Part shown: in pieces, positions 36,601-63,917 of the stretch
Layout of the letters: each line of letters begins with the position of its first letter
Numbering within the stretch: the first letter of the stretch is position 1
Assembly (NCBI GenBank): GCA_010909165.1
Contig: MU008158.1
Span: 3,001,478 to 3,065,477, forward strand
Length of the DNA: 64,000 nucleotides
Direction of reading: 5' to 3'
Source of the DNA: Anthoceros angustus
Lineage: Eukaryota; Plantae; Anthocerotophyta
Translations under genes and position numbers: made by a program
Notes under the pieces: generated by a model
The model's input: only the letters and a program-made list of their open reading frames with translations
Database searches by the model: none
What the model was told of the DNA's origin: nothing

Positions 36601-37778
36601 TGGCATGTCCGAATGACCGAAGAAGGTTTCATCCAAATCCTGGTAAGTCACAAGATAGCGTAGTGACACACTGGATTCAATGATAATTCAGTTGCTGATG
36701 AGTTGTTCGTTGTGCAGCATCTGGTGTAAATCCGGGACACCTTACGTACTTCAGGTTCTGTGGGCGAGTTCTAGCGTTAGCACTTATGCACAAAGTCCAA
36801 GTGGATGTGGTTCTCGCATTATCGTTCTTCAAGCAGCTTTCTGGTCTACCTGTGGTGTGGGAAGATGCAAAGGATGCAGATCCCTGCCTGTATGATAGCT
36901 GCAAGAAAATCTTGGAAATGGATCCTGCTGTTGTTGATTCAGATGTTCTGGGCCTTACATTTGTTAGTGAAAAAGAAGAACTGGGTTGTCGGGAGACACT
37001 GGAACTTTGTGAAGGTGGCAAGGACATGGTCGTAACCAGTAGAAATCGTGTGAGGTTTGTTGAGCTTTTGGTGCAGCGTCGTTTGGTAGCTTCGGTGGCT
37101 GACCAAGTAAAGTCATTTTCTGAGGGTTTTCAAGACGTGCTCGTGAATGCAACTCCTTGTCAATTCTTCCAAGTATTAGACCCTGAAGATCTAGACCAGA
37201 TGCTATATGGTAACGACCGGAACATATGTCTGAGTGACTGGAGAACTCATACAGAATACCATGGTTACAGCAGTTCGGATCTTCAGATAGTGTGGTTCTG
37301 GCAGGTGCATATTCTTGAACCTTTGATCTTTTAAACAATTTGCCAGAGATGCGTTTATAGCATGTGCAGCAACTACAAAGGAGTGGCATGTCTTGTATGT
37401 CCTTGTTTTGCAAGCTTGAAACCTCAAATCTGTAGCATGGGTTATGTCTGTGCATTTTTCTTTCCACATGAATTATATTTCCCTCTTGATTTACGCTAGT
37501 TCCGGGCTGTGCAGGTAGCAGAGGCTATGACCGCAGAGCAGCGAAGAAAGCTTCTTTTCTTCTCAACATCCGTCTCGCACTTGCCGGCGCAAGGTTTTGC
37601 AGGCCTTTCTTCAAAATTTCATATACATCGTGCTCATACTGATATAAGCTGGTTACCGACGGCACATACTTGCTTTTTTCAACTCATTCTGCCACCGTAT
37701 CCCTCCTACGATATGATGCGCGCGCGCCTTCAGTCAATTACAGAGGGGCATATTGCAGAAGGTTTCGGTTTCGCTTGA
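33696..37778 (+). CDS. UPL5: HECT E3 ubiquitin ligase with ubiquitin-like domain (UPL5-like); exons 33696-35138, 35382-36642, 36718-37304, 37515-37778
   Basis: UBL domain (LQFFVKT...DQRLIFCGRQL...DATLHLVAR). HECT motifs (EEATGPGVLREWF; LPTAHTCF with catalytic Cys). GT-AG introns keep the frame. Alternative start at 33768. Confidence 0.92.
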
Positions 37779-38253
37779 CGCTCTTCGCCTTTGTAATTCG
37801 CACTTGCAATCCATGGGAAGGCAGTTGGTTAACTGGCTCGAAATAACTTTTGAGGACCCAAGTTTTATTTTATGGCACCCACCAGTTGAGCCAGCTGCTG
37901 TTGGACATCCAAGTGAGTGATCGTCGTATTGTTGTGATGTTCACAACGATAACAACAGTTACTGTCTTGGAAGCTAGATTACCCATACACGTTACATAAC
38001 TTGTGGTTTTCATTGATACCTTTGCGAATTGAAGAGTAATCTTCCATCACTCAATCATGTAGAGGGTGTCTCTATTACCTGCGGTGTGGCCCGAAAATTC
38101 TCTGGAAACACACGCAACACCCTATAATTCTCTAAAAAACACACTCGCATCGCTGTGGATCGAAAGACTCAACATTAGTCGATTCGTCGTTTACGGGGAC
38201 TGACTGTCCATTACAGGTAACTGTTTTCCGGATTGAATCAGGGTGGCGTCAAA

Positions 38254-40756
38254 TCAAATTACATGGTTCTCGGTCTTGTTGAGCCGTTTCAGAAAGTCAT
38301 CCTTGAGCACCCTTCGCAACGTTTTGCCTGACAAGGACTTGGGTATGGATGACACGAACTCGACATGCCTTACTTTCTTGTAGCTCGCCACCTGACAAGC
38401 GTGGTAAGAGCGGTCAAGACTCTTGCCAGTGAAAGTTTCTCATGCGTTCGGGTGCAAATATATTAGCTCTGTTACCTTTGCTGCCACGTAGCGTATAACA
38501 TCTTCTTCGTTGAGATAGCTGTTAGGTGCTAGAACAACGCAGGCTGCTGGCACCTCTCCTGCCTCGTCATCTGGAATTCTGCTAATCTCCAGGTTGAACA
38601 TGTAAGAGCTGTGCAAATCTGATCAAATATTTACAATGGCCTACTAGTGTCCTTATGCATATACTCACGGTATGACTGCAGCGTCAGCGATAAGTGGGTG
38701 GGCCACCAGGATGGCTTCCAGCTCTGCCGGAGGGACCTGTAAGAAGCCAAGGATGTGCCGTTTTAGAAGCATGGATTCAATCGAATCGGAACCTGTGGAA
38801 GCATCCCCTGGCGCAAGCTTACAAGTTGCTTCCAGTACCTGGAACCCTTTGTACTTGATGAGCTCTTTCGCTCTCTCGACTATGAAAACATCTCCGTCGT
38901 CGTCGATGTAGCCTACGTCTCCTGTGTGAAGCCAGCCCTGCTTATCGATAGTGGCTGCGGTAGCTGCTTCGTTTTTGAAGTAACCTGCAGGTGAACTCTT
39001 GGATATTAATGTAGGCACTGAAGAGAATGGATCACCAAACGCCGTGTGAGACGTGGAAGTTGCATTCATGGGAGAAGCAATCGGAATGATTCGGACAAGT
39101 GTGCCTCCCCGAGATTCGAGATACCGTGCATATTGGACTCGCCGCGTACGCAAATTTCTCCTGCACGATTTGCAGGCAGGGACTCTCCCGTGTCCGGATC
39201 CAGAATTTTCATCTCCGTTCCTGGAGGTGAAGGAGGCGAGAACAACGTTCAAATGACTCATCAAGCTGACCAACTGTGCATAACCTTGTCATACTCTGAC
39301 AGAAGACTCTAATCTCATGTACCTGGAACGAGGAAGCCGACGGAGCCTTTCTTGGCATTCCCTCTGGGATGGCCTGGAGGTGCGTGGCTGAGCGTGATGC
39401 AGCTGACTTCTGTCAGTCCATATGCCTGCATCCACCACAGACTCTTACGGTGAGCATATGAAGGGGTGAATTTATGACCATTGCAATGTTGAGCAAATGC
39501 CTTTGAGAACTGGCCTGCCGTAATTCAACTCCAGGGAACCTGGCTTCAAATGCCTTTTGGATGTCAGGCGGGAGTGGTGCGGCTGCTGTCATCACTCCCT
39601 CCAGCTTCAGCTTGCTCAGGTCGAACTCGTTCACGATCGGGCTCTTCACCATTTGAAGGATGATGGGAGGCACGAGAGGGGTGAAAGTTACCTCGTACTT
39701 TATCAGGGCTGCCAACATGAGTCGTAAATCGTATCTGGGCAGCACCACCAGGGTGCCCTGATACCTCATGGTGGAGCAGCATATTCCCGTTGTGCCGTAA
39801 ATGTGGAAGAAGGGCAGCAGGCCCAACACCACATACCTTTTCACACTAGGAGTAGGAGCCACTGCAGGTATTGGGCAAGTGCGGATTGTGTTAGCAAGCA
39901 GATTTCGATGGGTGAGCTTCACTCCCTTGGACAGTCCTGTTGTGCCCGAAGAGTAAGGCAAAGCACACAGATCGTCCTGCTCCAATTCACAAGCAACTTG
40001 AGCTGGTCAGGGCTCAGCTTGAAGTAGCCCCACGAATCACATACGGCAGTCTACATGCGTGGTCACCTGTGAAAGGGGCTCAGGCGGGACGTATTCTGAT
40101 CCGTCGTACTCGAACAAGCGCTGCACTGATGTGGAGCCTTCGGGATTTGGTGTGACTGACTTGTCCGAAGAAGCTGCTGAGCTAAGGGGCAGGAGAAGAA
40201 TGGGCAGCTGATGCGCGAATTGCTTCACCTTGTCGAAGCACGCTGAGTCGGTCACCACGACCTTTGCATCGGAGTCTTGAATCTTCATTGGCACGATTTT
40301 GTAACCAACAGTTAAGTTGCTGATTGATCAATGCAAGTCCATGTACCACTACACATGCATGTGCTTTTGCTTTGAGCTGCAGAAACGTCTTACCTGTTTC
40401 TCAATCTCTCCGGGGTGGGAGTAAGGGTTCCCTCCAGAGAACACGCCGCCGGCCCACATGATACCGAGCACCAGAATAAAATACTCCGCAGTGTTGGGCA
40501 GAAGAACGAACACCACGTCTCCCTTTCGGATGCCCAGGAGGTTTCGAAGCCCGGCGGCCACGTTTTTCACCAAGATTCGAGCTTGGCCGTAGGTGTACTG
40601 CCGGTCGTCCAATGCATCCACCACAGCCACTCTGTGCTCATCTTCAGGCCGGATTGCATTCAGCAGAATGAATTCTGGAATGGTGACATTGGGTGGGATG
40701 GCTGCCGCAGCCAGGCTGTTCCGGAATATGTGTTCCGGCTCGGAGAGAGAGGCCAT
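38254..40756 (-). CDS. ACOS5: 4CL-like acyl-CoA synthetase, ACOS5 clade; 9 exons (40756-40394, 40282-40067, 39976-39515, 39425-39323, 39220-39125, 38984-38839, 38736-38669, 38578-38476, 38391-38254)
   Basis: AMP-binding [40 protein letters not shown]5-like signatures [11 protein letters not shown], FFHIYGxxGICC, [19 protein letters not shown]. No C-terminal PTS1 (ends NHVI). Confidence 0.88.
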
Positions 40757-43256
40757 TTCACGCTCTGACGGCCTCGACGGGTGAGGAAAGGAAACAAGTG
40801 AGGCTGGTACTGGGGCTGCCTGTTGCGCCAAACGCAACGGCTCTTATATGTTTCTTCAGTGGCGAGCCGACAGTGGGTAGCGAAAGCGCGAAGCTTGCAT
40901 GGACAATTCCAAGAAATCGGTCGTTGGTTGTTGGGCTACTGAATCCGACAGCGCCTGGTTTCCTGCGCTCCATAACCGGGCGCCCTGGCACTGGTAGGTA
41001 GAGCTTGCTTACTTTGCGACGCTGCTCCGTCATTTTCATGTCTCGACATACGCAAATCTGAAATATCATTACCTAGGTGCTATTTTATCTATCCATTGTA
41101 TGTGAGTATCAACGACTTTGGAGGCTCTTCCCTTCCCTTACCTTGCGGTGAGTGGAGGCAACGCGGCCGGGAGCTTCCTACATGTAGTCGGACTAAATAG
41201 TTGCAGCTGGCGTGCGGTATGCTTTCGGCGTTTTCGGCATGTCACACACCCGTTCATTCTGAAGTAATTTGCACCTAAAAGGTCAAGGCATTGGAGCCTT
41301 GTCAAAAGAGAAAAGATGGTGTCTACAGACCCTAGCCGGCAATTAGTGGCTGCAGCTTGTGCACTGCCACTCCCAGCCGTTGCCACGCAGCTGCTTCTCA
41401 ACATTCGCAACCTGTGCACAAGAATCCAAGTCAATACAGCTGAAACATAGTACAGTCTGTGGGATACAGGAGTTGACAATGAGCCGTGACGTGGAGGATA
41501 CCTCCATATTGAAATCCGCTCCCTAGGGTCGCCAGGCTCAAACCCCGGATCAATCCAATGCCCTGGAAGCACACAGATGATGTCACGCCACCCGAAGTCC
41601 TTAGAAGCTTTGAGGTACTTGGTGACTGCATGAGACTCATCTCTTTTGGCCTGCCACAGATGCCCGCAATGCAGCAACAAATGAGAGGGCATTCACCGAT
41701 TGTGCTGTCTTCAGAAGATAGGAAGGGACACAAAGAGAGTTTGTATTACCCGAGAACCGATAGTATGTGAAACCTTCATATAATCCACTTTAACTTTTAC
41801 AGGGATGCTGCTGATGATATGCCTGGAGATTCCATCAAGCATTAGTTGAGAAGGGACTTCCACAAGGTCTGCAGCCACCATTCACAGAGACCGTGTCATT
41901 AATCCTTGCATAGAAACGCTTTCTTCGCAGTCAGCGATGGGACAGTTAGGACGTCCAGCATCGGCCCAAGGTCTGCACAGCCGACCACGCTCCCTTCAGA
42001 TGAACCCAGTACACGCACTGCTCCTTGCACTGTCGACACTTCTGAGAGGTGTGCAAGAGTAACTCCCCAGGCCCACCCTGTAGCCTATATCCACATTCTC
42101 ACATACTCCCACCTCTCGCCCACCCAGGACTGCGAAGGTGAAGCACCTCTACCATGAACATCATCAAACAGTCCAGGAAGAATGCAGACAAAACTAAGCT
42201 CAATGTCAAGCAGCAGAAGCAACAGAACCTGGAGCAGCCAATGGCTCACGCAGCTTTCCAAACACCGGTGTAAGAACTCTGAGCCGGGCATAAGCAAAGC
42301 CTGCAGACTGCTGCCATGTGCTCCCGGCTTGCAGTCATCATGCTCTCTGGCAGAGAGCTTATATTCTGTGCAGCATCCACCGTCAAGCCCACGTTCAAGC
42401 CCATGGGAACCCATTGCCACCGCCATCTCCCATTATCACCTGCATCAGTCTACCGTCATTGATACAGAGGATACGGAGACCAAGCTCACTCTACCACCCA
42501 ACATGCTGATGACCAACCTAGTCCTAGGCCATTGGGCAGAGCCATTGCCCGCTGGAACTTGAGCTGCAATCCTTGCCCAGTCGTCAGCTTGGCACCCACC
42601 TCATATCGGTATTCCTGCGAACGCCGGATTTTAATCAGGCCAACAACGGCAACGACGGGAATGCCAAATCCCCAGCCCCCACCATAGCACCAAAACCAGC
42701 TCTTCGATGAGAGACCAAGAAGAAGAACACAGACCCGCCCCGGAAACCTGCGATAGCACCGCAGAGGCACGTATCGAGAGTAGGGCTGGGTGAGGCAAAG
42801 ACGGAGAAGAAATCCTCATCATCCTCCACCGTCTTCCCCGTCTCCATGGTCACTCCCGCCTTCAGGCCGTGCTCTGCTCTACCTACGCATTGCTCCTGGA
42901 CCCACAGCCTCCCCCAAATATCAGCAATGAAGGCTCGAGGTTATCAGCTGCTGAGCTCCAACAAGCTCGGCATTGGAGCCATCGGCAACCCAGGCCAAGG
43001 CCTTCCTCGTCAGCTGGATAAGATAACAAATGTTTACAACGGGAGTTTACAACGAACCTGTAGAGGCTAAGACAGCTGTATCGAGACACCAAATCTTTAC
43101 AACGAACCAGATTGAGTAGGTGATATGCTGCCCTAATTCGCTCGCATTCGCTCTCCTGCTTTTCCTACGGGCTTGGAGGCCTGAGCGGCCGGGCTACCGT
43201 GGTCTCGCAACTCATCCACTGTTGGCCGAGGGGCTTAGGGTTTTGCGGCAGCAAAC

Positions 43257-44543
43257 ATGGAGCCTGAAGATGTCGGCGATGAGTACACGGAGGATTTCAG
43301 GAGTGAAGACACTGATAGCGAGGTGGAGTACACAGAGTATGATCCCGATTTTCATGTGATGCTTTACCTGCTAGGGGAAGATGTTGGTAATGAGGGCTCT
43401 ACCAGCGCAGCCGGCCCTGTGCCGCATGCTGTGGTGTGTCCGACGTTGCCGGAGGAAGTGGTGGAAGCAGTGCTGGTGTGGTTACCGGCGGCAGCGCAGG
43501 CCCGCTTCCGAGCTGTGTGCAAGGCGTGGCTTGCCTTGCTCACCAATCCGGAGTTTCTCCGGCGGAGCTTTCTCCGGTCCATTTCAAGGACGACGCTTCC
43601 CGTGTGTACTGTGAGGTATCTGCCGGAAGAGTATGATTATAAGCCGGATTTTCCATGGGACCAGCTACGACGAATTTCGCCCCCATATAAGAGCTTGAAA
43701 GTGGATCTGTCTTTTTTGCCGGAGGTGTTCCATTCTCATCTGTCGAAACTTTACTATGCTTCACCGGGTGGTTTCATGTGCGCCAGCCGTCTCCTTCCCG
43801 ACGGAATGCACTTGTGTGTGTTCAATCCAATGAACCAGAGCTTCAAAGCTTTGCCCATCCTTGAGAAACTTTGGGGTTCAGAAGTGTTCCCGTTGATGGG
43901 AACAGTCATTGCAACAGAAAGCATTCCCAGCTTCAAGGTGTATGTTCCTCGTATTCAACCAGTTGACAGCGACGATCTCGAGTTTGATGACGTTGCCATC
44001 TACAGTAGCATCAGTGGTGAGTGGAAGGGCTTCGTAGGTTGCTCTGACGGGAATTTAAGTGACCCGCCGCCTGTGGCCTGCAATGGAGAATTGTACACGA
44101 CGGTGGACAGCACCCCCTCACGCCTGGTGCGGCTTAGCACGGAGACGGGTACAGGGTACTGGCATGTGGCCCTGCCCGACTTTGAGGAGCTCCGAGGCGA
44201 GCATTGGAAGAGGGAGTTTTATGTGGTAGGGCACCGTGGAAGGCTGTTGTGCTGCTGCGGTGGTATTTGGATGTTGGACGATGGCAGGCAGGTGTGGGTC
44301 GAGGTTGCGGGGAGGTGCCCGCCTGACCTACTGCCCGGCAATCCAGAGACGGAGACTTTGAGGTTGAAGAATGTTTACGTTGCTGGGGACCTCGTGGTTT
44401 TCTTTTATTTTACTCGTGGTGATCCAAGAAACTCACATTGTCCTGTCGCTTACGACATGGTTCGAGGTTTCTGGCGAAAGGTTCCCTCGATTATCGGTCA
44501 ACTTGGGGACGTTTTTCAACCTATGCCCAGTTTGAGGCTTTGA
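43257..44543 (+). CDS. Intronless F-box protein (F-box plus probable beta-propeller/FBA-type region)
   Basis: 428-aa ORF with LPEEVVEAVLVWLP...RFRAVCKAWLALL F-box, CVFNP and AYDM motifs, and an acidic N-terminus. Confidence 0.88.
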   Translation: MEPEDVGDEYTEDFRSEDTDSEVEYTEYDPDFHVMLYLLGEDVGNEGSTSAAGPVPHAVVCPTLPEEVVEAVLVWLPAAAQARFRAVCKAWLALLTNPEFLRRSFLRSISRTTLPVCTVRYLPEEYDYKPDFPWDQLRRISPPYKSLKVDLSFLPEVFHSHLSKLYYASPGGFMCASRLLPDGMHLCVFNPMNQSFKALPILEKLWGSEVFPLMGTVIATESIPSFKVYVPRIQPVDSDDLEFDDVAIYSSISGEWKGFVGCSDGNLSDPPPVACNGELYTTVDSTPSRLVRLSTETGTGYWHVALPDFEELRGEHWKREFYVVGHRGRLLCCCGGIWMLDDGRQVWVEVAGRCPPDLLPGNPETETLRLKNVYVAGDLVVFFYFTRGDPRNSHCPVAYDMVRGFWRKVPSIIGQLGDVFQPMPSLRL

Positions 44544-45254
44544 GTTTCAGTCTCTGTGACATGCTCCCTCAGCAAGCTGCGTGTGAGCGGTTGGCTCACA
44601 GTTTTTGTTCTGTTGTGGAGAGAAATAAGGACTGGAAGTTGTTGGAAGTGCCCTGTGATAGTTTTTCGACTTGTAGGAAATTTTGCTTGATATGTAGGAA
44701 CATTTGTTGTCGGAAGTGTTCTGTGGTGAATTTTCAGCTTGATATGTCAGAAATTTTTTGGTCTGTAGTGTTCCGAGATGATTTTTGAGCTTGACATGTA
44801 GGAAATTTTGGCAACAATGGACTTGTAGGACAGAAGGACAACTAAGACCACTGGAGCAAGAAACTGGATTCCTTAGAGGCAACTATGACAAGCATTTGAC
44901 AGACTGGCCTGTTGCCAGCTATGGAATAACAGAAATTTACAGATAAAAATACTTATAAATGTAAAATCAATGAAATATTAATACAATATGTAAATTATAA
45001 TTTATAATTTAAGAATATATTTAAATAATATGAAGTTAAATAAATTTATATAAAATTTTAATAAAATAAATATAAAAACTTTTTGTTTACTTTTTCTGTA
45101 AAGAGATACAAGCGAATGATAATAAAATAAATTTAAATAAAATTATAAAATGAATAAAATATTTAATTATATTTATAATAAATGAATTCAAAGAGATTGA
45201 ATTCACTTCCGCCTCGCTCCTACAACTGCTCCTTCTCGCCATGGCTTCCTCTTA

Positions 45255-46115
45255 CATCCTTCGCTCCCTCTCTCTAGCTCTTCTTCTACATCTTTTGCTC
45301 CTTCTCGCTAGCTCTTCTTCTACATCCTTCGCTCCCTCTCTCTAGCTCTTCTTCTACATCCTTCGCTCCCTCTCGCTAGCTCTTCTTCTATATCCTTCGC
45401 TCCTTCTTGCCCGCACTTCTTCTACATCGCTACTCGCCAACGCTTCTTCTACATCGCTACTCGCCAACGCTTCTTCTACATCCTTCGCTCCAAATGGCTT
45501 AGGCTAAATGGACACACATTTATAAGAACGTAGTGATTAAGCATCTTGAGTTTAGATCTGTACTTAGATTGGGTGCTTGAAGGGAGTGGATGCCCTTGAT
45601 GCAAGTAGCTTAGGCACACCGTGGTATAAGTCGTTAAGTACTAAGTCGCATGACGAAAATCCGTCCTTAGTGGACTTAAATAAAATTCTTCTTCTTCTTC
45701 TCACTAGCGATTCTTTTGCATCTTTGCTCCCTCTCACCAGAGCTTCTTCCATATCCTTCGTTCCCTCTTCTACATCTTCGCTCCCTCTCACCAGAGCTTT
45801 TTCCATATCCTTCGTTCCCTCTCACCAGAGCTTTTTCCATATCCTTCGTTCCCTCTCGCCAGCGCTTTGCTCCCTCTCACCATAGCTTCTTCCATATCCT
45901 TCATTCCCTCTCACCAGCGCTTCGCTCCCTCTCACCATAGCTTCTTCCATATCCTTGATTCCCTCTCGCTAGCACTTCTACACGTCGCTCCCTCTCACCA
46001 GAGCTTCTTCCATATCCTTCATTCCCTCTCGCCAGCACTTCTACACGCCAACGGTTCTACATCCTTCGATCCCTCTCGCTAGCGCTTCTACATCCTTTGA
46101 TCCCTCTCTACATCG
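45255..46115. repeat. Pyrimidine-rich 33-34 bp minisatellite (CATCCTTCGCTCCCTCTC.C.AG.(T)CTTCTTC.A) in two arrays split by a ~200 bp spacer
   Basis: Arrays at ~45255-45490 and ~45700-46115, preceded by an extremely AT-rich tract at 44940-45200. Confidence 0.85.
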
Positions 46116-46234
46116 CTATTGGGATGGAGTACGTCCCATCCATGATTACCTCGAGCCTTTGGAACTCAGCGATGCCTCCCACCCATGATTGCTTTAACCT
46201 TGGTGTTTACTCCTACATCACTACTAAGTGATCT

Positions 46235-46313
46235 CACCAAGTTAAAGCAATCAAAGCAATCTTGAGATGGGGTACCTCCCACCCGAGATTGCTTTGATTG
46301 CTTTAACTTGGTG
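46235..46313. repeat. Perfect 28-bp inverted repeat (hairpin) with 23-nt spacer
   Basis: CACCAAGTTAAAGCAATCAAAGCAATCT (46235-46262) and its exact reverse complement (46286-46313). Confidence 0.9.
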
Positions 46314-46478
46314 TTTCCTCCTAGATCACTACTGAGATGGGGTACCCAACTATTACTCTAGCCCTCGGTGCCCAGGGGCGCGACGCCGCCGCGCCTCCAC
46401 CCATCATACCTATTCTTGTCAAGGTCAAAAAAAGAAAAAACATACCACCAAATCTGTAAGGGTGCTGGCATGAAGAGT

Positions 46479-49301
46479 TTAACCCTTTATTTGGCCATTT
46501 GGCTGAAGCAAGGATGTCCCCAACTGAACCATTAGGGGATACACTGGCGGAAACTCTTTATCCCCTCTTGCCCTGACTTTAGCAGAGAAGTTATTGAGGG
46601 TGACCTTAATAATGTTTCTCCATGCCGCCTCCTCTCCATTAGAATCCAACCATCTGGAGTACTCAGCGGGAGGTAACTTCGCCTGCTTCATTGGTGACTC
46701 TAACTCTTCTGGAGCCCGAGAGTACAGGTGATGAAGAACAGCACTTGGAGGAAGCTCTTGGAGCAGAGGACTATTTTCGATCTGATTTGTCTCAAGAAAG
46801 ATGAAGGGTTTGAAGGCACGCAAAGCCCGATATGGTGACCCCAGCTGCTCCACGGGGAATAAGTTTTGGCCAACAACTAGCTCCAGCTCTGCCATGTCCC
46901 GTGCCAACTTCAGCTTCCCTGCCTCTGACAACGGCCTTATCAAGGCAGCATGGCGCACAAAGAACAGTAATACACGTGATGCCATCTTCCGTGCAAGGCT
47001 TGCACAGATTGTGTCTCCAGACGCTGTGGAATAGCCTGTCGACAGTGATCCAGGTAGGAGTTTCGCAAGGAACTCAGACCGAAACAAGATCACAGTTTTC
47101 TGGAATTCCTCCATATAGCTGGAACTGTTCCCTCCCGGATCCTTCTCCACCGATGTGGAGCCAAAATTCAGGTCATGTACCTGCAGAATGATGCTTTCCA
47201 GTCTTTCCGCCATGGCTTTGAAGAGAGGGCCAATGGAGTCGGATGCTACCCGATAAAGGTCTTGTAAAGAAGAGGAGAGAACTTCTGTGGCTGAACTCGG
47301 CAGCAGAGATGTTAGCCGTGAGTGCACTTCCTGTAATTGGAGACATAATGTGAAGTTCTTTAATTGCAAAGAATTCGCAGGTCCAGTGACCTGCCTGGAG
47401 TCCGATCCTGTGGAGAACTGATGCAGCCAGATGCAGAACATTAGTAGGACAGCATGTGACAGACCGCATAAGATAGTTTGAAGAGCACAATTGAAATCAG
47501 CATTATCCCCAGCGATCCCAGAGTTACCTGATAATCTGCTTTCTCTGCAAACAGATGCAGGACTTTGGCAACTTCCCGTAGAACTAAAACAGTAAGTCTT
47601 TCCTCTGTTTTTACGGCTTCCACTTCCTCCTGGATCCGTGAGACAAGTCGCAAGATTTGCTCTTGCGTAGGGATGCTCCCTCTCACAGCAAGAACAAACA
47701 TTCCATATACCAGGTCACTTAGACTTTTCTGACAGCGAGCCAAATACTCTGTCTGGTAAGGCTCCAACGCTTCAATTAGAAGGTCCTTGTCTTCAGGCTT
47801 GATAGCCGCTGAAACACCTTTCACATCTGGAACGTGTAGAAGTCTTTCCAGCAGATTGTCTACCATACTAAGGAGTTTGGGATATCCGACCACAAAAGTT
47901 TCTTTGACAAAGCTCGAAGCAGTAAATGCAGACTTCATTTGACTTGAGAAAGACTTCGCAACCCCTTCCCACACCCTCTCTGTAAGCATTGGATCACCGG
48001 CCTGTATAAAACAATTCAGCAGACAGCGGAAGCGTAAAACTTTGAAAGATGACAGAGATTGGATGCCAAGAAACGGAACGGCAAAGCCCACAAGGCAGTA
48101 CTTCTTAGTCTGAGTTCGAGAAATAAGCAGATTACTTTACCTGGACAACTTCCTCTAGAAAAATCAGATGTGAGATTGGATCTCGCTTCTTAGACAGGAC
48201 ACGCTGCAGATGCCACACAGCAATAAGAATTGAATGAAGCTGGTCCATGCATGTTACCATCCGCTGCCATAGCCCATCCCGTGCTCTTCCCGTCCCTCCA
48301 AGCTGAGGTGTGCCAGATCTCTGAATGCCCCCAGGGCCCCCAAGAGACCCAACACTAGCTGAGATGGCTTTCATGTCCAGAGCTACACCAACACTTTTAA
48401 TTGCCTGAAATTTATACTTGGTGATGAGGTTTTCCACAGTTGTCTTAAGCTCTCCCATATTGTAGTAGACTTGTAGGAAACTTCCGACCTCTGGTTGATT
48501 TAGAGACTCCATGCCACTTTCAAGTCCCTTCATGGCTTCACTTCGAATCCGATTCCCCACCCCTGAAAGCCAGGAGGCCTGTTCATCTATGACATCAATG
48601 CCAGAAAGATCAGCCTCTCTCCTGACGGTCTCCACCTCATAGAAGAGCTGAGCCGCTTTGGACAAATCAATCTTAGCGCCTTCAGGAACTTCCACAATTT
48701 CCCTCAACTTCTTCAGATGCTTCAGCACGCGGGTAACTGACCTCAAAAGCTCCACAGTTTCATGCAAACATGAAAGTTGCCTGGATTTGGCCTTCATCGA
48801 CTTGTACGGGTCCGCAATCTCGGATCTGACTCTGCCAACAGATGCCTGCAAACTATCGACTCCCGACCTCACCACAGCCAGCACACTTTCCGCCTCTTTC
48901 AGGCTGGAAATCGGCTTGAGCAGCTCATCGTGTCTAAGAAACACTTCACTTCTCAGCTGCTTCTCGAGGAGCTGGATGCCTTCCTCCAGCTTCTCAGAAG
49001 AGGCTGCAGCAGATCCGCTGCTCAAAGCATCACTAGCAAATTGCGTGGCATTGAAGTCCTCTGACAGAAACTTGGAAAAAACTGAATCTTTCTCGAATTC
49101 CTCGATTGCAGTCCTGGCAGACGCTTCAGCGGACTCCGCCGCACCAACGTCCAATCCACTCAAGGAGCTAGATCCATTCTTCTCGTGGTGAAAGGCATGC
49201 CCTGATCTGAAACTGTGTAGATGCTGAAGCCGCGGTGATTGGCCCGGAGAACCTCGGTGAAGCGCGCTTCCAGTTCTCTGCAGGGACATGGTCGCTGCCA
49301 T
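46479..49301 (-). CDS. COG5: Conserved oligomeric Golgi complex subunit 5; exons 49301-48141, 48001-47528, 47417-46479
   Basis: FLSEDFNATQFAS, AVWHLQRVLSKKRDP, FFVRHAALIRPLSEAGKLKLARDMAELEL, RGDKEF.PVYPLM. GT-AG introns in phase 0. Confidence 0.93.
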
Positions 49302-50736
49302 GACTTCGAAGTCGGACTGGGTGTGCCGAGGGCTCGCCTTCACAACTTACTACACTCCCCCTACCACAAAACGCCCCTAGGGCTTGAATGCTTGAATAGG
49401 GCCCTGCTCGTTTAACCCCTAAAGGACGAAAAGCCTGTTTTGATGACCCTAATGTCACTCCCACAATTACTATCATGCAGAGTTGCATCCGCTCATCCCT
49501 TTCCAAAAAAGAAGATGGTGTCCGGTTTTTGCTCTAAAAATCCACATAGTCCTCAATGCCATACACATGTGATCAAATGTGCGAGATGGAAGAAACGATG
49601 TAGGAAAAATCCCACACCCCCAAAACGCAGCTACAACCACTCAATTTGAGCAGATTCGTCGTTTTAAGGGGTTATTGAAGTTCCAAAGAAACTGCTTCAA
49701 TGGTGCAACACTTCATTGTTCCTCCTCCTTGTTGTGGAAGAAGAATTGTTGTACTCTACTAGCCACACCCCATCTCGCAAGAAAGGGCCTTACGGCTTGA
49801 GCTTGAGCGTCAACGCGAGGAGCAATGACGTGCTTCAGGAAGTTTTACCTGTTTCTGAAAGGTTCTTCATACAGTTCCTTCTTCCTCCTCCTTGTTGTTG
49901 AGGAAAGAATTATTGCCTGATCGGATCTCATTTGTGCTATTCTAATAGCCGAGCTCCTTGCTCGCTAGCTCTCTGCTCTTTCCTTGTGTAGGGTTCCAGG
50001 AAGCCACGCAGAAGGAGGTTGCGATTTAGTGTGCGGCTCTCCGTCCGTGGTATGACAATGGAAAGGCACTGCATCTTCGCTCGACAGCACGCAGCTGCCG
50101 TGGTGAGCGGGCGAGCACCGAATGTTGCAGATGTGGCCGAATTTAGGAGGATGGCGATTAGCCGCCTTCCGGCAGCGGGCAGGGATGGCGTTTGGTTGCG
50201 GATTGGCAGGCACCTCTGCAAGAGTTTGCAGAAGCAGAGTGTAGTGAAGAGGAATGCGAAAAGGCGCGACGGGGACAGTGTGAAAGGACACCTGTGGGAC
50301 TGGTTTTGGTTCTGGATTTCGGCAGGATATAAAAAAGCCACGAGCGAGGTGTCGACGACGCCAAGGCGTAATGAAAAGGGACGGTGCAACTGAGCTCTGG
50401 GCACGCCTCCACCGTGTCGCAACGGCCTGGTTCCGCTCTGGGAGCCTGATCTGCTTTTCATTGTCCTGAAGCGAGGCAGGGGCTATTGCTCCGCTGCCGC
50501 AGCAAAAGAGCGCTGTTTGCCTTGCGTGAGCTACTGTGTGAAAGCCATGCAATCCAAGTAGCTGCCAGTGTGCTACAAGGTGGTAAGGCGGCCGGATGGC
50601 CGGACTCGCCAATTCACGGTAGATCTGGCCTGCATCTCCAGGGATTTCGGATTTGTATTGCCTGTGGGAGTCCCCTGGATGTGAGCAAATTGCAGGACGG
50701 TGATGCTGCCAACGAGTGGTGAGCTCTGGGAAACAG

Positions 50737-52488
50737 ATGGCCTCGATTTTGGCGCTGGACGTTGGGAGCAAGGCAGCGGAGTTCAGACATGCTTTGAATG
50801 CCAAGCTGTCGGAGTTTGAGCCGCTGGTGGTAGTGGCAGCGTCGGTGGCAGCATGGCTGTTCATTTCGTCCTTGCGCTCTGCTTTGAGTGCTGCGTACTT
50901 AGATCTTCAGCACAAGGGGTTTAGACAGTTCTTCTTCACCATTTTGTTCAGCATTCTCAGGCGAGTTCCAGGCGTGAGGCAATACATGCAAGCGGAGCAG
51001 GAGAAGGTGATTGACAAGCTGCGGGAGAGTTTGAAGTCTGACCGGAGTGCCTGGCTTTCGGAACTCCCCCATGCTGGCGCAGCCGCTGAAACTGTGCTCG
51101 ACAGAGTGAGATTTCACCAACGTGGAGACAGCGCTTGGCAGGGGAGAGTTTCGGGAGCAGTGTACATAGGAGGGAGCAATGGTGAAGGGCACTTCTCCTT
51201 GCTCAATGAGGCATACTCCCTCTTCTCTCACACCAATCCGTTGCATCCGGATTTGTTTCCCAGCGTTGCTCGGTTCGAGGCAGAAGTGGTTGCTATGACT
51301 GCCGCCACTCTCGGAAGCAAGTCTAAGCTCTCTGGAGGTGAGGTGTGTGGCAACATGACCTCCGGCGGCACCGAAAGCATACTCATGGCCATGAAAACAG
51401 CTCGAGACTACATGAAGACTGTGAGGGGTATTGTCAAACCCGAGATGATTATACCTGACTCTGCCCACTCTGCATACGACAAAGGTGCGGACTACTTTGG
51501 TATCAAACTCTGGCGAGTACCAGTACTGAGAGAGTCCCTGCAGGCAGACGTGAAACAGATGGCTCGGCTGATCAACAAGAACACAATCCTCATAGTAGGT
51601 TCTGCTCCAGGTTTTCCCCATGGCGTAATAGATCCCATAGAGGAGCTTGGAGCGTTGGCTTCCAGTAGAGGAATCTGTTTTCATGTGGACCTTTGCCTTG
51701 GAGGCTTCGTCGTCCCTTTTGCTCGAAAGCTTGGCTACCCCATTCCTCCCTTTGACTTCACTGTGGAAGGCGTCACATCCATATCTGTGGATATTCACAA
51801 ATATGGTCTCGGGCCCAAGGGCTCCAGTGTTGTGCTCTACCGGAACCATGATCTCAGAAGGCATCAATTTGTGGCGGTGACAGAGTGGTCTGGCGGCCTG
51901 TATATCTCACCTTCCATAGCTGGGAGCAGGGTGGGCGGCATTATCGCTGCATCTTGGGCAGCAATGATCGCTCTTGGGGAGGATGGATATTTGGAGACAG
52001 TGAGGAAGGTGATGGAGGCGACCCAACAAGTTCGAAAGGGTATCGAAGCTGTTCCAGGTCTCCACATCTTGGGAAAGCCAAGCACCACTGTCATAGCATT
52101 TGGAGCTAAAGATTTTGACATTTACAAGGTAAGGTCCCTCATGAGCTTAGTATGTATTTGCCTCTTATGGTTCAGATTTGCATGAACTGATGTTTGTATT
52201 CCACATGTTGTGTAAACCCTCGGACAGGTGAACGATGTAATGTCGAAGAAGGGGTGGAGCTTGAATGCACTCCAAAAACCTAGTGCGATACATGTGTGTG
52301 TTACGCTGCAAATTGCAAGTACGGTGGATATGTTCATCAGCGACCTCGCGGATGCTGTGAGCTACGTGAAAGCTAATCCACAAGGTGTGGAAGATGGCAT
52401 GGCACCCATATACGGGGCTGCAGCAAAGATGCCAGACCGGGGAACGATCAGGGATATTCTGGTAGCATACATGGATTCTAGATGTTGA
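50737..52488 (+). CDS. DPL1: Sphingosine-1-phosphate (LCB-phosphate) lyase; exons 50737-52128, 52228-52488
   Basis: HTNPLHPD, GNMTSGGTESI, HVDLCLGG, PLP-lysine motif SVDIHKYG, N-terminal TM anchor. Confidence 0.95.
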
Positions 52489-55874: not shown

Positions 55875-56283
55875 GAACATGCCTCTCTAAGCATCGAATC
55901 AGGACCAAAGATGCTACAAAAACATTCCGTAACGGTATCGGGATGATCTCCATTCCGTCAGCCCGTGGAGCTCGGGCCTGCCTGGCAGGTCCCGTCATTT
56001 CCTTTCCATGGCCGGGCCCCAGCTCGATCGGCCCGTCTTCATCCGCTTGAAGCGGGAAGGAGCTTCCGTGTGCAAACAATTCTGCGTCCTGTTTGGGGCG
56101 GAGGGGGCGGAGCATGGATCCGTTGCAACTGTTTGAAACCGAAATTAGCATGATTGTCACGAGCTGAGATGCCTCCACCTCGGCGGGATAGTTTGAAACA
56201 GAAGTATCGAGCATGTTCCCGATGAGGGCGAGGGAGGGGGTTTAGGCATCAGGAAGGGGGTGAGGGAACACGATTCTGGCTTC

Positions 56284-57651
56284 ATGTGGAATCGTGCTCC
56301 CGAAAGCGAGGCCAAGGTCCGACTCTTCTCACATTGGCTGACAGTTTGGGGATCGGCAGGGAGAGGGCCACCTGCATGGATGCGCTGGCGGAGATGGCAT
56401 CTTCTCATGGGCTTTGCTGCTTTGGCTCTAGGTGGATATGCTTCTTACCGCATTTACATCTCGCCCTTAGTGGTGGCCAGCCGACGACTATTTGCTGCCT
56501 CTGTCGATGTTGCGGATGCTGTGCGCGATGCCAGCGCTTGCGTGGCCCTGTTGTGCAACGACCTCAGTTCTTTCTTGGTGACGGAGAAAGATGAAGTTCC
56601 CCGCAGTTTCAGACAGTTGATGAAGCTGGGGAGGTCTGAGGACTTCCGGGAGACTGTCATGGCGGTGACTGGATGTATGATTCAGGGAGCTTTGGATCCG
56701 CTTCAGCCTGCCGCCAGGGATGAGCGGTCCCAAGGCCAGCCAATCCCGTCAGAGAACGGCGAGGAGAGCGAACGGCAAGAGGAGGGATTGTCGGACAAGG
56801 TTTTCAAGCATCTTGCCAATCCAGGTTTTGCCTCTGCAGTAGTCGGGGCTGCTGCGAGGAATGTTGTTATCGGGGTGTTAGAAGGGATGGAGTCCAGTAG
56901 AAGGTACCAGTCGCGTCAACAGAATTGCAGATTCGACAGCTCTCCGGGCAGAATCGATCCGATGTCAGAGGATTCCGAAGAGCAAACGCGGAGTGGGTTG
57001 ATGTGGGGATGCACTGCAGAAAGCATCTTGGACATACTCAGCAGCAGCAAAGGGCAAGCGCTCATTTCGGAATGCATTTTAATCTTTGTAGGAACGGCTG
57101 TCGCGGTTTACCTCAAGGAAACGAGTCATGTGAACGTGTTTGAGGACATTGCTGCAGCTGTGACTAAACCTGACCACCGTGAGCCCTTGGAGGAAATGTT
57201 GAAATCAGTCAGCGGCGGTACAGTGCGGACTCTGGTAACGACATTACATGATGTGTATGTGTGCCAGCCATCGTCAAGCTTTCATCCCGGAAGTGAGACC
57301 TCTAGGATAAGGGGTGAGACCCCTAGCTTTCGTGAAGACAGCAACACAAACCAAGCTTCAGCCGCGGTGCCTAGGGATGAAGATCTGCCCTCTTGGTGTA
57401 GTGGACTGTCTCAAACTCTTGCTGTGCCCAGCAATAGGCAAATTGTATCGGATGTTGTGGATATCCTGTGGAATGTTGCGGCTACTCAGACTTCTGAAGT
57501 CGTTCGGTCTTTTGGGTTGCACCTGCAGACGCGTCTACTGGCAGTGGTCAAGATGCGAGTGATCTTCACCGTCGTGTTGGCAGTTTGTCTTCATACCGTG
57601 ACCCTGCTGCCGCTTGGATTGGCAAGTGCAGCGGCTCAAAGAAGGATGTAA
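56284..57651 (+). CDS. PHLOEM PROTEIN 2-LIKE A10-family protein, intronless
   Basis: GGYASYRIY, DLSSFL..DEVPRSFRQL.K, GFASAVVG..ARN, VGTAVAVYL.ET..VNVFEDI, TLAVPSNR motifs resemble the PP2-A10-like family. N- and C-terminal hydrophobic segments. Confidence 0.8.
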   Translation: MWNRAPESEAKVRLFSHWLTVWGSAGRGPPAWMRWRRWHLLMGFAALALGGYASYRIYISPLVVASRRLFAASVDVADAVRDASACVALLCNDLSSFLVTEKDEVPRSFRQLMKLGRSEDFRETVMAVTGCMIQGALDPLQPAARDERSQGQPIPSENGEESERQEEGLSDKVFKHLANPGFASAVVGAAARNVVIGVLEGMESSRRYQSRQQNCRFDSSPGRIDPMSEDSEEQTRSGLMWGCTAESILDILSSSKGQALISECILIFVGTAVAVYLKETSHVNVFEDIAAAVTKPDHREPLEEMLKSVSGGTVRTLVTTLHDVYVCQPSSSFHPGSETSRIRGETPSFREDSNTNQASAAVPRDEDLPSWCSGLSQTLAVPSNRQIVSDVVDILWNVAATQTSEVVRSFGLHLQTRLLAVVKMRVIFTVVLAVCLHTVTLLPLGLASAAAQRRM

Positions 57652-57904
57652 AAACCACGCCTTTTGCACACAAACATATCTTATTTTCAAGTTTTCAGTT
57701 TCTTCCAATCCGCCAGTTGCTTTGGACAGTTTGTAGTCGACAAGGTTTGCATTCGACAAAGGTTTTGGTACCCAATAGATGACAGTGTGCCCTCTCATTC
57801 ATCAGGGTGTTTTGGTCATCATGTGAAGCTTCTACAAGGGCATCCTTCCAAAGTCTGTTGTTAGACTCAGCTTTCGACAGCGGTTCCTGTACGATGGCCA
57901 CAGT

Positions 57905-58525
57905 ATGGCAACCGGACCCGTTGTGGAACCATCAAATTGGTGTGTGCACAGGGATTCTACCAGGAGCTCCTGCTCACCTCATCTTAGAGAGTCAACTCCT
58001 GCAAACAAAGCCTCTATGTGCAGCAGTGTAAGGAGCCTAGCACTTCCACTTCCGAGAAAATGTGTGGGCGTGGACTTGTTTTCCAGCGATGCTCGTTGCC
58101 AGGAGCAGGAGCACTTGTGGCAACAATCATTTTTGGACCCTACCTTGCGGTGGGTTAGCAGACGAGATAAGAAGAGCTCCCGTTCGCCAGACATCCGGGG
58201 TAAGGGGTCCGGCGAGGTGCTGTGGTTAGACAAGTTCAAGCCAGCTTGGGTTCACGAGCAGCTCGTTTCCTTGGATATGCAGATGGGTCATGGTGCCTCT
58301 CCTTCCAAGTCGAGCTCTCCGGAAAATTCTGAAGCTGGGAGGCCTGCAGCATGGGAAATGGGCTCCCGCTGTAGCAGTGTAAGGAGCCCAGCACAACCAC
58401 TTGTGAGAAAATGTGTGGGTTGGGACGGCTTTTCCAACGATGGTCGTGGCCAGGAGCAGGAGCACTTGTGGCAACAATTGTTTCTGGACCCGACCATGTG
58501 GTGGGATAACAGACGAGATGAGAAA
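57905..58525 (+). pseudogene. ORF segment with OSB-type PDF motifs (one full but degenerate, one truncated)
   Basis: LWQQSFLDPTLRWVSRRDKKSSRSPDIRGKGSGEVLWLDKFKPAWVHEQL (58115-58264) and LWQQLFLDPTMWWDNRRDEK (58466-58525). Both arise from a direct repeat, ~58020-58170 vs ~58372-58520. Confidence 0.7.
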
Positions 58526-58529
58526 CTAC

Positions 58530-60315
58530 ACATGCTAAACTTGGGAAACCTGGGAAACCTGATGAGGCCATACAACTGCACCATGGGATGCGTAGGTCAG
58601 GAGTGAAGGCGAATGGTCACGTCTTTGTAGCTGCCCTTCAAGCTTGTGCATTTGCCACCGACTTGGAATCTGGTAGAAAAGTGCTCTGTGATGTGTTGCA
58701 CAGTGGCATTCCTACCAACTTGTTCGCGTGGTGGACATGTATGCAAAGTGTGGTGAACTGAAAGATGCCCGCCAGGTTTTTGACAGCATGGCCACAAAGA
58801 ATGTGGTGACATGGAATACCCTGATATGTGGGTTTGCACAGCAAGGACTCGGCCAGGAGGCGCTTGTTCTGTATGGACAAATGGAGCAAGAGGGCCTCAT
58901 TTTGGCTGACCATGTTACTTTTGCTTGCCTTCTGAAGGCCTGTGGAAGCACTGGTGCCTTACAGAAGGGCAAGCAGCTGCACTCACAGATTGTCAAAGAG
59001 GACTGCTGGATGACATACTGGTGGGCACCTGCCTGGTGGACATGTATGCAAAATGTGGTGAACTGAAAGATGCACGCCGGGTTTTTGACAGCATGGCCTC
59101 AAAGAATGTGGTAACATGGACGGCACTGATTGCTGGGTATGCACAGCAAGGGCTCGGCCACGAGGCGCTTGTTGTGTATGGACAAATGGAGGACGAGGGC
59201 CTGATTGTAGCTAACCATGTTACTTTTGCTTGCCTTCTGAAGGCCTGTGGAAGCACTGGTGCCTTACAGAAGGGCAGGCAGCTGCACTCACAGATTGTGG
59301 AAAGAGGACTGCTGGATAACGTAGTGTTGGGCAACTGCCTGGTGGACATGTATGCAAAATGTGGTGAACTGGAAGATGCACGCCAGGTTTTTGACAGCTT
59401 GGCCACAAAGGATGTGGTGACATGGAATGCCCTGATATCTGGGTATGGTACTTGTGATGATGGTCACAGAGCACTAGCTTGTTTTGAGGAGATGTTAGTT
59501 GCCAGTATTCAGCCTGATGGTGCTACTTTTACTTGCCTTCTAGTAGCATGCAGTCATGAGGACTGGTCCACGAGGGTCGCAAGCACTTTGATTCCATGGC
59601 TGAACAGCATGGCATCAAACCTACTATTGAGCATTACACCTGCATGATTGATCTTCTCGGGCGTGCAGGCCATTTAGATGAGGCTGAGAACATGCTCTTA
59701 TCATGCGAGGGCCAAAGTGTTGTTGTGGGATTGACGGCTTTGTTGAATGCCTGCAAAAGTCACGGGGATGTAGAGAGGGCGATCTGGTGTTTTGAAAGCA
59801 TTGTTTGGCTGGACCCTCAGCGGGCATCTGCGTATGTGCCCATGGCCAATGCCTACGCAGATGCAGGTAGGTGGACCGATGTAGACAGGATTGAAACACA
59901 GAGAAGGGTAGCAGGAGCTAACAAGAAAACCTGCAGCGGCGACTATTGAGGTGACTAAGCAGGTTCATAGATTTTTGGCGGGAGAAAGGAGAGAGGATAT
60001 TGCGCTGAAGGTCGACAGCACGAATGCACGTCTGAAGCAGGAAGGAGGGCATGTACCGCACACAAATTTGGTGTTGAAGCCACTGTGTGAGAATCAAAAG
60101 GAAGATGTGCTTCGTGGGCATGCTGAGAAGCTAGGTCTGGCATTAGGTCTCTTGAACACTCCGGGTGGGACACCTCTGGTGGTAACGAAGAATCTACGTA
60201 TGTGCAGTGATTGCCACAGCTCCACGGAGATCATGTGAGTGAAGGCTTGAACAGAGAAACTTACCGTGTGCATCGATTCTGAAATGGTTGTTGCAGCTGC
60301 AAGGCTCGACCCTGA
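58530..60315 (+). pseudogene. PLS-class PPR-E-DYW gene of KP subtype, disrupted
   Basis: P-L-S repeats (LVDMYAKCG, VVTWNALI, VTFACLLKAC), E motifs (HYTCMIDLLGRAG, AYVPMANAYA), KKPAAATIEV, HAEKL, KNLRMCSDCH, terminal YRVHRF*NGCCSCKARP*. At least 4 frameshifts and 2 stops. Confidence 0.9.
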
Positions 60316-60591
60316 GAAATACGACCCTGAGGAAAAGGACACGGTCCATCCCTGGGCAAACTGAGACAGGACATGGATTGGCTATCACTGAGCCACCTGG
60401 CACCACAAGAGGATCAGAATCCAATCATCTCTCTCTTGCTTCTCTCCCCCGGGTTTGTTTTGATTTATTTTGTTTTCAAAAATCTATCTTTTATTATGAA
60501 ATAAAACAATCTTATACTATACCTCGTTGATTTGGTATTAATTAATTAAAATTAATAAAAGTTGAAAATTCATAAATTATTATACTAAAAA

Positions 60592-61865: not shown

Positions 61866-63917
61866 ATGGACACGTTAGAGAATGAACAGGCACAAAACTA
61901 TGTATCTAATACTAAAATTGAGTCTACCTCAAACTTAAAACAAGAACATCTTGTTGATATGGGAGCAATGGAAGCTAATAAGGAAGATGTTGAGTCTTAT
62001 GGTAATAGATTGAGCTTAACTTTTATATTTCTTTGAATTGATAATCTAGATATTAGAGTTTTAGTTAAACATGCAGGTGCATCAATCCCAACAATAATAG
62101 TTGAAAACGAGGAGAAAGTTGTGATTCAACCAAATTCAGTGATGAACAAAAAGAAGACCATGTTCAAAGAAACGAAATCAAGTTCTTCAAAAGTTGGTCT
62201 TCCCAAGAAAAGAAATGAAAAATCAAGATCAAATTCAAAAATTTCTCAATCTCCTCCTAGTAGACTTTCAGCTGAAAAGACAAATATGATGCCCAAAATG
62301 TCTACAATTTCTTCAAGATTTTCAGCCCTGGTTAATGTTTACCCAAAGAGTAGGAAAAAATCATTGTTTGACACTATGCAAGGATTCACTAAACATATTG
62401 TAGAAACATCAGGATTAGCTCATAGGAGATCTCGAATGAGTTTGGACTCAACGCAACAACTAAAGTTTTCATTGGTTCCATTTAAGTCAGATGCATTAGA
62501 TCCTGCAAACCGCAAGATTTTGCTTCTTGCAGCACATGTAAAACCAAGAAAGATTGCAGGAGATCCATACTCAACACGTGAGATTGTCGCAGATCTACTT
62601 GGGGCATTCGGTGCTATGTTCACCTGGTCGATTTCTTTTACAATAGCTATGAGTATCATTATTTTCACCAAAACAACAAAAGACGTAAATAGATGTGAAT
62701 ATGTGAACATAGATAACAATGCCACGTGGATGAAATCCAAAGCTTTTCGAGATTGTCTGTTGTATATTGATCACCAAACAATGTCTAACATAGACAATTA
62801 TAAATATTTGGGTTATTATAGTGGAAGATCCGTGATGGAAGTACCAATTTATTTTATAATTTTACTTTTTATGTATGGTAGAAATGCCTTGAGTCGTAGG
62901 GAATGGTTAGTTCTCCCTAGTATTATCATCTTGCAACTCACTTTTATTGTTCTCATAAATGTTATTGGTAAGAGACCCACTTCATCAATTGGAGGGATCC
63001 TAGCTGTGCAGCTACCTTTGCAATTTATTGCTATGTTCTCTATATTGAAGATGTGTCAAATAAGTCATGTAAATCATCTATATTATCCATTTTGGTTACT
63101 TTGGATACAAAGTATACTACAAGTCCTTATGATCCCTCTCTATGAAGCTTTACTTCCGCTAAGTTTCACCCATGCTAGCACCAACCTTCAAAAGGCCGTA
63201 ATTCGTCTATTTATCCATCCATTCATATGGGCCATTCATGAAACAGGAGTCCGCATAGCTGTTCAGGCATTATTTCATCAACACTCATTTTCAGTTCATA
63301 GTGCCATCTTAATGATGCGCCCACGATTTTTTAATGCTTTCATTGGTAGATTTCTTTTGTCATCTCTTTCAAGCATAGGAGACATTATAGTCATTAACAT
63401 CATGTTAATGCTATTGGATATTGGAGCTCGATTGACAACAAAGGACAAAGATGATTGGTTGTATCACTTATTCACTAGTAAACACCATACGAAAAGAATT
63501 CAAGATAGTCAAATAAGTCGAGACTTACGTGCTACTTTTCAATTTGTCGACATGTTTACAGAGGTGGTAGGTGTAGTAACCGTATCGATGATTTATATCT
63601 CTGGGAATATTTCATATACATCTGGAGTTGGTGCTGATCTTTGGACAGTTGCAACAAATATGATGGTTCAGTTAAGCACTTTACTGTTAGGAGAGTTGAT
63701 TGGCATGGGATTTGAAAATAAATTTTCTTGTATTCAACATCGTAGAGTTTGGATAAGCCAACATCCTTTATTTTTACTTTTGATATTTTATATTGTGTAC
63801 ACCGAGCTCGAAAGACTCTCGACAGTTATTCTAGGTTTATTTTGCCTTGAAAGTTTTGACAATATCACTACCTTACAATATTGTGATGAAGCACATATTC
63901 CAACATATGCATTTTAG
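61866..63917 (+). CDS. Uncharacterised multi-pass membrane protein (658 aa as spliced); exons 61866-62001, 62077-63917
   Basis: Long intact ORF in AT-rich DNA. Phase-1 GT-AG intron 62002-62076 joins an upstream ATG exon. K/S-rich N-terminus and roughly 8-10 hydrophobic segments. Confidence 0.8.

Follow-up and report, generated by a model that had tools for sequence, protein, structure and literature searches.

The locus at positions 57905–60315 of the window (by which we mean the whole 64,000-nucleotide stretch of Anthoceros angustus DNA that was analysed) is probably a decayed, non-functional member of a very large family of hornwort-type PLS-PPR proteins of the DYW:KP (GRP) kind that carry PDF modules, and we hold this explanation as a whole with good confidence. 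Members of the family would begin with an organelle-targeting leader and continue through one or more PDF modules of about 60 residues, a PLS-PPR array, an E motif and a DYW:KP domain. Descriptions of PPR editing factors list a targeting peptide, a PPR array and E/DYW domains; the subject here is a conserved N-terminal module, with ssDNA-binding relatives, found on PPR proteins of ferns, lycophytes and the hornwort type, with or without DYW.

The closest intact relative among the matches listed is the Logan protein P0060, which has 753 aa in the order leader–PDF–PLS–E–DYW:KP, a C-terminal end reading GGRP, and a DYW domain with the K-P box, H-A-E, N-L-R-M-C and a G-R-P end. A single ORF on a genomic contig of 9 kb encodes it, and all pieces of the locus can be aligned to it (Table 1). 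On the same contig (L001), positions 1–1104 of the minus strand hold a second PPR-like gene, whose DNA matches window 58735–58873 in reverse.

Table 1 Features of the decayed PDF–PPR–DYW:KP locus in window coordinates
Feature	Position	Strand	Remarks
Repeated family unit: leader, PDF, PPR, E and DYW together	57887–60322	+	from contig depth
ATG and Ser/Arg-rich leader (aa 1–62)	57905–58090	+	similar leader composition in P0060
Tandem duplication unit 1 (family D3)	58019–58173	+	85% identity to 58370–58524
PDF motif copy 1, full length, degenerate	58091–58294	+	positions 11–78 of the OSB-only profile
Tandem duplication unit 2	58370–58524	+	contains the N-terminal half of PDF copy 2
PDF copy 2, N-terminal half only	58442–58524	+	positions 11–38 of the 83-position model
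Deletion junction, PDF frame 2 abutting PPR frame 1	58524–58525	+	P0060 residues 100–262 without counterpart
PPR piece, frame 1	58525–58731	+	58% identity to P0060 residues 263–322
9-nt tandem duplication, GGGAAACCT twice, giving G-K-P-G-K-P	58543–58560	+	within the first PPR motif that survives
Three tandem copies of a 305-nt PLS triplet	58690–59447	+	about 90% identical; families D1, D2 and D4
PPR piece, frame 0	58728–58994	+	Pfam and tblastn of P0060
PPR pieces, frame 2	about 58997–59560	+	Pfam and tblastn of P0060
P2/L2/S2 and E motif region, frame 1	59560–59928	+	E motif about 59761–59928
DYW:KP domain, N-terminal two thirds, frame 2	59924–60235	+	64% identity to P0060 residues 620–723
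DYW C-terminal end, frame 1	60241–60315	+	in-frame TGA, few residues missing, A-R-P then stop

An OSB-type PDF motif at the head of the locus

The forward-strand ORF 57905–58606 encodes 233 aa and holds a W-rich motif twice, once complete and once as a half. The original prediction had placed two copies after a Ser/Arg-rich N-terminal stretch, and both were found there, the second at half length; the leader is presumed to be an organelle-targeting peptide. For scoring, we used an OSB-only profile, seeded with the Populus OSB1 motif and iterated on non-PPR proteins, whose final set comprised 182 PDF segments, all from OB-fold proteins without PPR. The ORF scored 81.5 bits against it (E 1.4e-21 for a nominal one million sequences), a value that excludes chance for the motif match. 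A phmmer search with the ORF against 1.84 billion representative proteins returned 165 matches at E 1e-3 or better, of which the best was OSB3 of Chenopodium quinoa (9.5e-31); OSB1 of Populus was also matched. Judged by these sequence comparisons, the W-rich motif is the PDF motif of OSB proteins, as had been proposed.

The two copies are worn to different degrees. Copy 1 scored 55.7 bits with the OSB-only profile on the ORF and 47.8 bits in a six-frame scan, and copy 2 scored 27.7 and 20.3 bits, respectively. Copy 1 reads R-W-V-S-R for W-W-D-N-R and P-D-I for P-D-F, and it keeps 10 of the 12 near-invariant columns of a 48-row alignment, with D26 and F39 lost. At position 58193 nearly all family contigs have a T, giving Phe, against Ile in the window copy, and the loss of near-invariant PDF residues is private to that copy. 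In copy 2, W-W-D-N-R is intact and the P-D-F half is absent. The two tandem units lie 351 nt (117 codons) apart, a spacing with which the duplication keeps the frame; between them we calculated a dS of 0.23 and a dN/dS of 0.72, from 24 differences, too few to interpret.

The resemblance to OSB proteins extends beyond the match scores. Both groups share a motif of about 60 residues with W, P, W-W-D-N-R, K, P-D-F-K-H-K, L-W-L and P-x-W-V, a predicted small fold of helix, short strands and helix, and a PDF copy number that varies through tandem duplication. They differ in arrangement: in OSB proteins the motif is C-terminal and follows an N-terminal OB fold, whereas in the PPR-linked family the PDF is N-terminal, lacks an OB fold and has PPR repeats next to it. 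Several of the phmmer matches have a Pfam SSB domain (OB fold) ahead of their motif copies, and an OB-fold probe matched 92 of 167 retrieved proteins, with no PPR protein among those 92. Pfam gave no SSB/OB-fold match in ORF 57905–58606, and none was found upstream of it. On sequence grounds the ORF is thus not an OSB protein, the N-terminal OB fold being absent. Pfam assigned the PDF ORF to no family, even at E 1.

An AlphaFold2 model of copy 1 (58079–58303, pLDDT 79) has a helix at either end and three short strands between them. ESM Atlas clusters that resembled it were an OSB1 cluster (TM 0.85), three Streptophyta PPR/DYW clusters (57, 127 and 63 members; TM 0.75–0.82) and two clusters of hypothetical tailed-phage (Uroviricota) proteins (TM 0.63–0.64 over 58–65 residues). 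BFVD held nothing comparable to the copy 1 model. Among solved structures, Foldseek against the PDB gave nothing below E 4 for it, and the best VIA-align score against 48,161 chains was Z 4.4, which is noise level. The absence of a solved structural relative for the modelled copy 1 does not show that the fold is new.

An editing factor in pieces downstream of the junction

The second PDF copy had been reported to break off at about 58525 and to be followed on the same strand by PPR sequence, and this is what we found: the break lies at 58524/58525, and the sequence from 58525 onward codes for the middle of a PPR motif in a frame that differs from the PDF frame by one base. Just after the junction lies the perfect 9-nt duplication (GGGAAACCT twice), which may be a trace left by repair or slippage when the junction formed.

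Pfam searches downstream of the junction recovered PPR (1.3e-32), E_motif (3.1e-09) and DYW_deaminase (2.6e-17), all well above the cut-offs, so that a PPR array, an E motif and a DYW deaminase domain are all present in the domain order of a PLS-class editing factor. The window copy has one PLS triplet more than P0060, and dN/dS among the triplet copies was 0.51, again from 24 differences, too few to interpret. The region 59924–60235 carries the K-P box, H-A-E, N-L-R-M-C and C-x-x-C-H, features of the GRP subtype of DYW:KP (as listed in PMC9478123), and after the broken stretch that follows, the C-terminal triplet reads A-R-P (G-R-P in P0060). The Pfam scores and the readable KP features together bear out the PLS array, E motif and KP-type DYW domain that had been described from the sequence. 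A six-frame scan with stops replaced by X detected no second PDF or PPR locus within the window.

These parts place the locus beside the hornwort DYW:KP proteins of the GRP subtype on which the designer proteins KP2 and KP3 are based (PMC9478123). The likeness comprises the PLS array, the E motif, K-P replacing P-G, H-A-E and N-L-R-M-C, and the C-terminal A-R-P of the window copy may be of the G-R-P kind; the differences are that the window copy is broken and that an N-terminal PDF module goes unmentioned in the published descriptions covered. DYW:KP proteins are confined to hornworts, lycophytes and ferns, and the hornwort variants are DRH and GRP (PMC9478123).

Intact PDF–PPR proteins in other plants

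An N-terminal motif followed by PPR repeats was present in 8 of the 150 phmmer representatives listed. In Adiantum capillus-veneris, KAI5076972.1 (801 aa) has a PDF and then PPR, and KAI5061374.1 (512 aa) has two PDFs and then PPR. PDF before PPR is also the order in Selaginella (XP_024517303.1, 910 aa), Diphasiastrum (KAJ7231026.1, 503 aa) and two transcriptome ORFs of Pteridium aquilinum, and the Logan protein P0002 (1371 aa, on a transcript-sized contig) has three PDFs. The Adiantum, Selaginella, Diphasiastrum and Pteridium proteins, which are unannotated, resemble the family of the window copy in their N-terminal PDF and in-frame PPR repeats; they differ in being intact, in lacking DYW and in having one to three PDF units, and the window motif is just 31–42% identical to theirs.

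The gene for the 801-aa A. capillus-veneris protein has an A. nelumboides orthologue of 820 aa. The two genes span 2406 and 2463 nt, respectively; the spans equal the coding lengths, and the genes are therefore single exons and not mergers of gene models. By protein identity between these two orthologues, our gauge of conservation, the PDF core (83%) is kept as well as the PPR part (80%). A word-indexed protein search gave one Adiantum orthologue for P0104, no match for ORF 57905–58606 and only the query itself for the P0060 PDF, a yield that reflects the word index and length filter rather than absence.

Among the listed matches, one of the eight PDF+PPR clusters (P0060) has a DYW domain, and Selaginella is among those without. 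The PDF module is consequently not specific to U-to-C editors. The proposal of a parent family that joins PDF modules to an editing factor therefore holds in part: P0060 is an in-frame relative of just this design, but the module is not tied to KP enzymes.

The family to which the window copy belongs is large. In public reads, from four organisms in all, each run contributed 7,725 to 61,688 short contigs that cover 57887–60322 at 90–99% likeness, and the summed contig depth drops off abruptly in the bins on either side of this span. Leader, PDF, PPR and DYW thus form one repeated unit of a very large family. These results bear on a more trivial reading of the locus, in which a piece of an OSB gene has come to lie by chance beside an unrelated PPR pseudogene. 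The junction is indeed out of frame, and the PDF part has an ATG and an ORF of its own, as such an accident would leave. Against it, the OB fold is absent both from the ORF and upstream, PDF and PPR belong to a single repeated unit, at least five other plant species, named or unnamed, have intact fusions in one frame, and PPR-linked PDFs are the nearest relatives of the window motif in a tree of 47 PDF segments. We rejected chance juxtaposition as contradicted by the repeated unit and the intact in-frame fusions, and we consider it extremely improbable. What would have favoured it, the lack of any intact relative joining PDF and PPR in one frame, is not the case; such ORFs are present in Adiantum, Pteridium, Selaginella, Diphasiastrum and P0060.

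In the 47-segment tree, which is itself unresolved, PPR-linked PDFs need 4 changes compared with a mean of 11.4 after shuffling, and a single clade for them is compatible with the data (AU p 0.28). On these sequences, one origin of PPR-linked PDFs is neither shown nor excluded.

Probable decay of the window copy

Searching the window with P0060 by tblastn, each broken piece separately, gave the frame order 2 (PDF), 1 (58552–58731), 0 (58728–58994), 2 (59009–59560), 1 (59560–59928), 2 (59924–60235), 1 (60241–60312) along the locus. There are six frame changes, namely the junction and five more, and one in-frame TGA (60280–60282, within the last DYW piece). At the junction about 163 codons are missing (the end of the PDF, the linker and the initial PPR motifs), and one paralogue contig runs past 58524 with the rest of the motif, including P-D-F. 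The caveat that the junction is out of frame and looks like a deletion was correct, P0060 residues 100–262 being absent.

The further breaks can be read against the paralogues. Frame 0 is entered by a deletion of about 10–11 nt near 58724–58728, where paralogue contigs have 11 extra letters after 58724. Frame 2 is entered at 58994 by a 1-nt loss in an A run and frame 1 at 59559 by a 1-nt loss in a G run, with paralogues showing the extra A and the extra G, respectively, and the DYW frame 2 is entered at 59926 by a 1-nt gain in an A run. The coding sequence is otherwise well preserved, with a single in-frame stop in 1.8 kb.

We considered whether the gene might be intact in the organism, with the frame breaks introduced when a highly repeated family was assembled or polished. 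Three of the breaks (58994, 59559 and 59926) are one-base length changes in short A or G runs and could be assembly errors of this kind, and short-read polishing would be unreliable among thousands of nearly identical paralogue fragments. The public-read contigs at the locus were short paralogue contigs, none of them spanning the locus or separable from its paralogues. Homopolymer errors cannot, however, give a 163-codon gap with an out-of-frame junction or the multi-base deletion at 58724–58728; the TGA, the truncation of the DYW C-terminal end and the replacement of Phe by Ile in the PDF signature are likewise left unexplained, and neighbouring single-copy genes retain open frames of 403–598 aa. 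We therefore regard an intact gene as very unlikely.

Since the lesions outside homopolymers are inexplicable as assembly errors, we take the locus, which bears at least seven of them in all kinds, to be a pseudogene and think this very likely. The proposed history has three steps. An in-frame tandem duplication of 351 nt would have given two PDF units; a deletion would then have taken the second half of unit 2, the linker and roughly the first two and a half PPR motifs; and further frameshifts and the stop codon would have followed the deletion.

One part of the locus might have outlived the rest: the 233-aa ORF could persist as a small PDF protein in its own right, still driven by the original promoter once the PPR part had gone. 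It is open, begins with ATG, and retains the leader and one full motif. Copy 1, though, is without two near-invariant residues and differs from the family consensus at many places, the dN/dS between the units is no clear sign of constraint, and none of the listed runs holding the stretch is recorded as RNA. Survival of this kind seems to us very unlikely.

Positions 33501–52185 of the window hold long uninterrupted ORFs for a ubiquitin-domain protein, an F-box protein, COG5 and a PLP-dependent decarboxylase; from the length and continuity of the neighbouring ORFs it follows that indels are not widespread in the assembly. A 463-aa ORF (56260–57651, plus strand) lies immediately before the locus, where the DNA is GC-rich; Pfam gave no match for it even at E 1, and it looks like a gene of its own. 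Just downstream, in AT-rich DNA (GC 0.30–0.36), lies a 598-aa ORF with a GTG start (62121–63917, plus strand), with no Pfam match at 1e-3.

Possible role of the PDF module

As a pseudogene with at least seven lesions, the locus is by itself silent on function; its own contribution is only as an example of how a family member decays. What can be proposed concerns the intact parent. In such an editing factor the target base lies downstream of the RNA stretch read by the PLS array, and its conversion from U to C is the work of the DYW:KP domain. As the N-terminal end of a PPR array faces the 5′ side of the bound RNA, a PDF module at that end would be expected immediately upstream of the PPR footprint. 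In the alignment, its conserved aromatic and basic residues are W14, W24, R28, K31, F39, K42, W49 and W57, a set that would suit contact with a single strand regardless of sequence. The PDF would accordingly be pictured as a small, separately folded domain, with conserved Trp/Phe and Arg/Lys, at the 5′ end of the bound RNA.

In AtOSB1 the PDF motif alone suffices for ssDNA binding (reviewed in PMC6963530). The module on an intact parent may add sequence-independent binding of single-stranded nucleic acid beside the PPR footprint, to which we give about even odds. It is possible, but less likely, that the module would instead dock the editor to OSB-coated ssDNA or to another partner. A broader version is that the PDF of seedless plants could be a second substrate contact, with ssDNA or OSB-coated nucleoid DNA, that would station editors at the template or nascent RNA or give DYW:KP access to R-loops; we think this improbable. 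The original prediction had likewise suggested tethering to nucleoids or nascent transcripts, or action on ssDNA and R-loops, which is pure speculation.

Literature context and significance

We found no paper in the full-text literature covered, which was without Gutmann 2020 and Gerke 2020, that links OSB or the PDF motif to pentatricopeptide, PPR or DYW proteins. Neither a 2026 survey of editing factors across the kingdom nor the genome paper of Anthoceros angustus mentions a PDF module on PPR proteins. Provisionally, then, the PDF–PPR architecture is undescribed, and the literature searched likewise held no functional description of it, in agreement with the original prediction. Surveys of extra domains use Pfam, which has no PDF model, and would miss the module.

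The presence of a PDF module on PPR proteins raises a testable question about how editors engage their substrate. Designer GRP-type proteins convert U to C, with a low efficiency (22–50%), and GRP genes are under-represented in transcriptomes (PMC9478123); the PDF module may serve as an add-on or variable for designer U-to-C editors.

PDF motifs in other settings

PDF motifs were also seen beyond land plants, with seven PDF stretches in the P0045 cluster of the dinoflagellate Effrenium voratum and five in P0004 of the snow alga Sanguina aurantia. In a Coptis gene model (P0058), PDF motifs are joined to a kinesin motor, and P0020 of Kingdonia has twelve PDF stretches.
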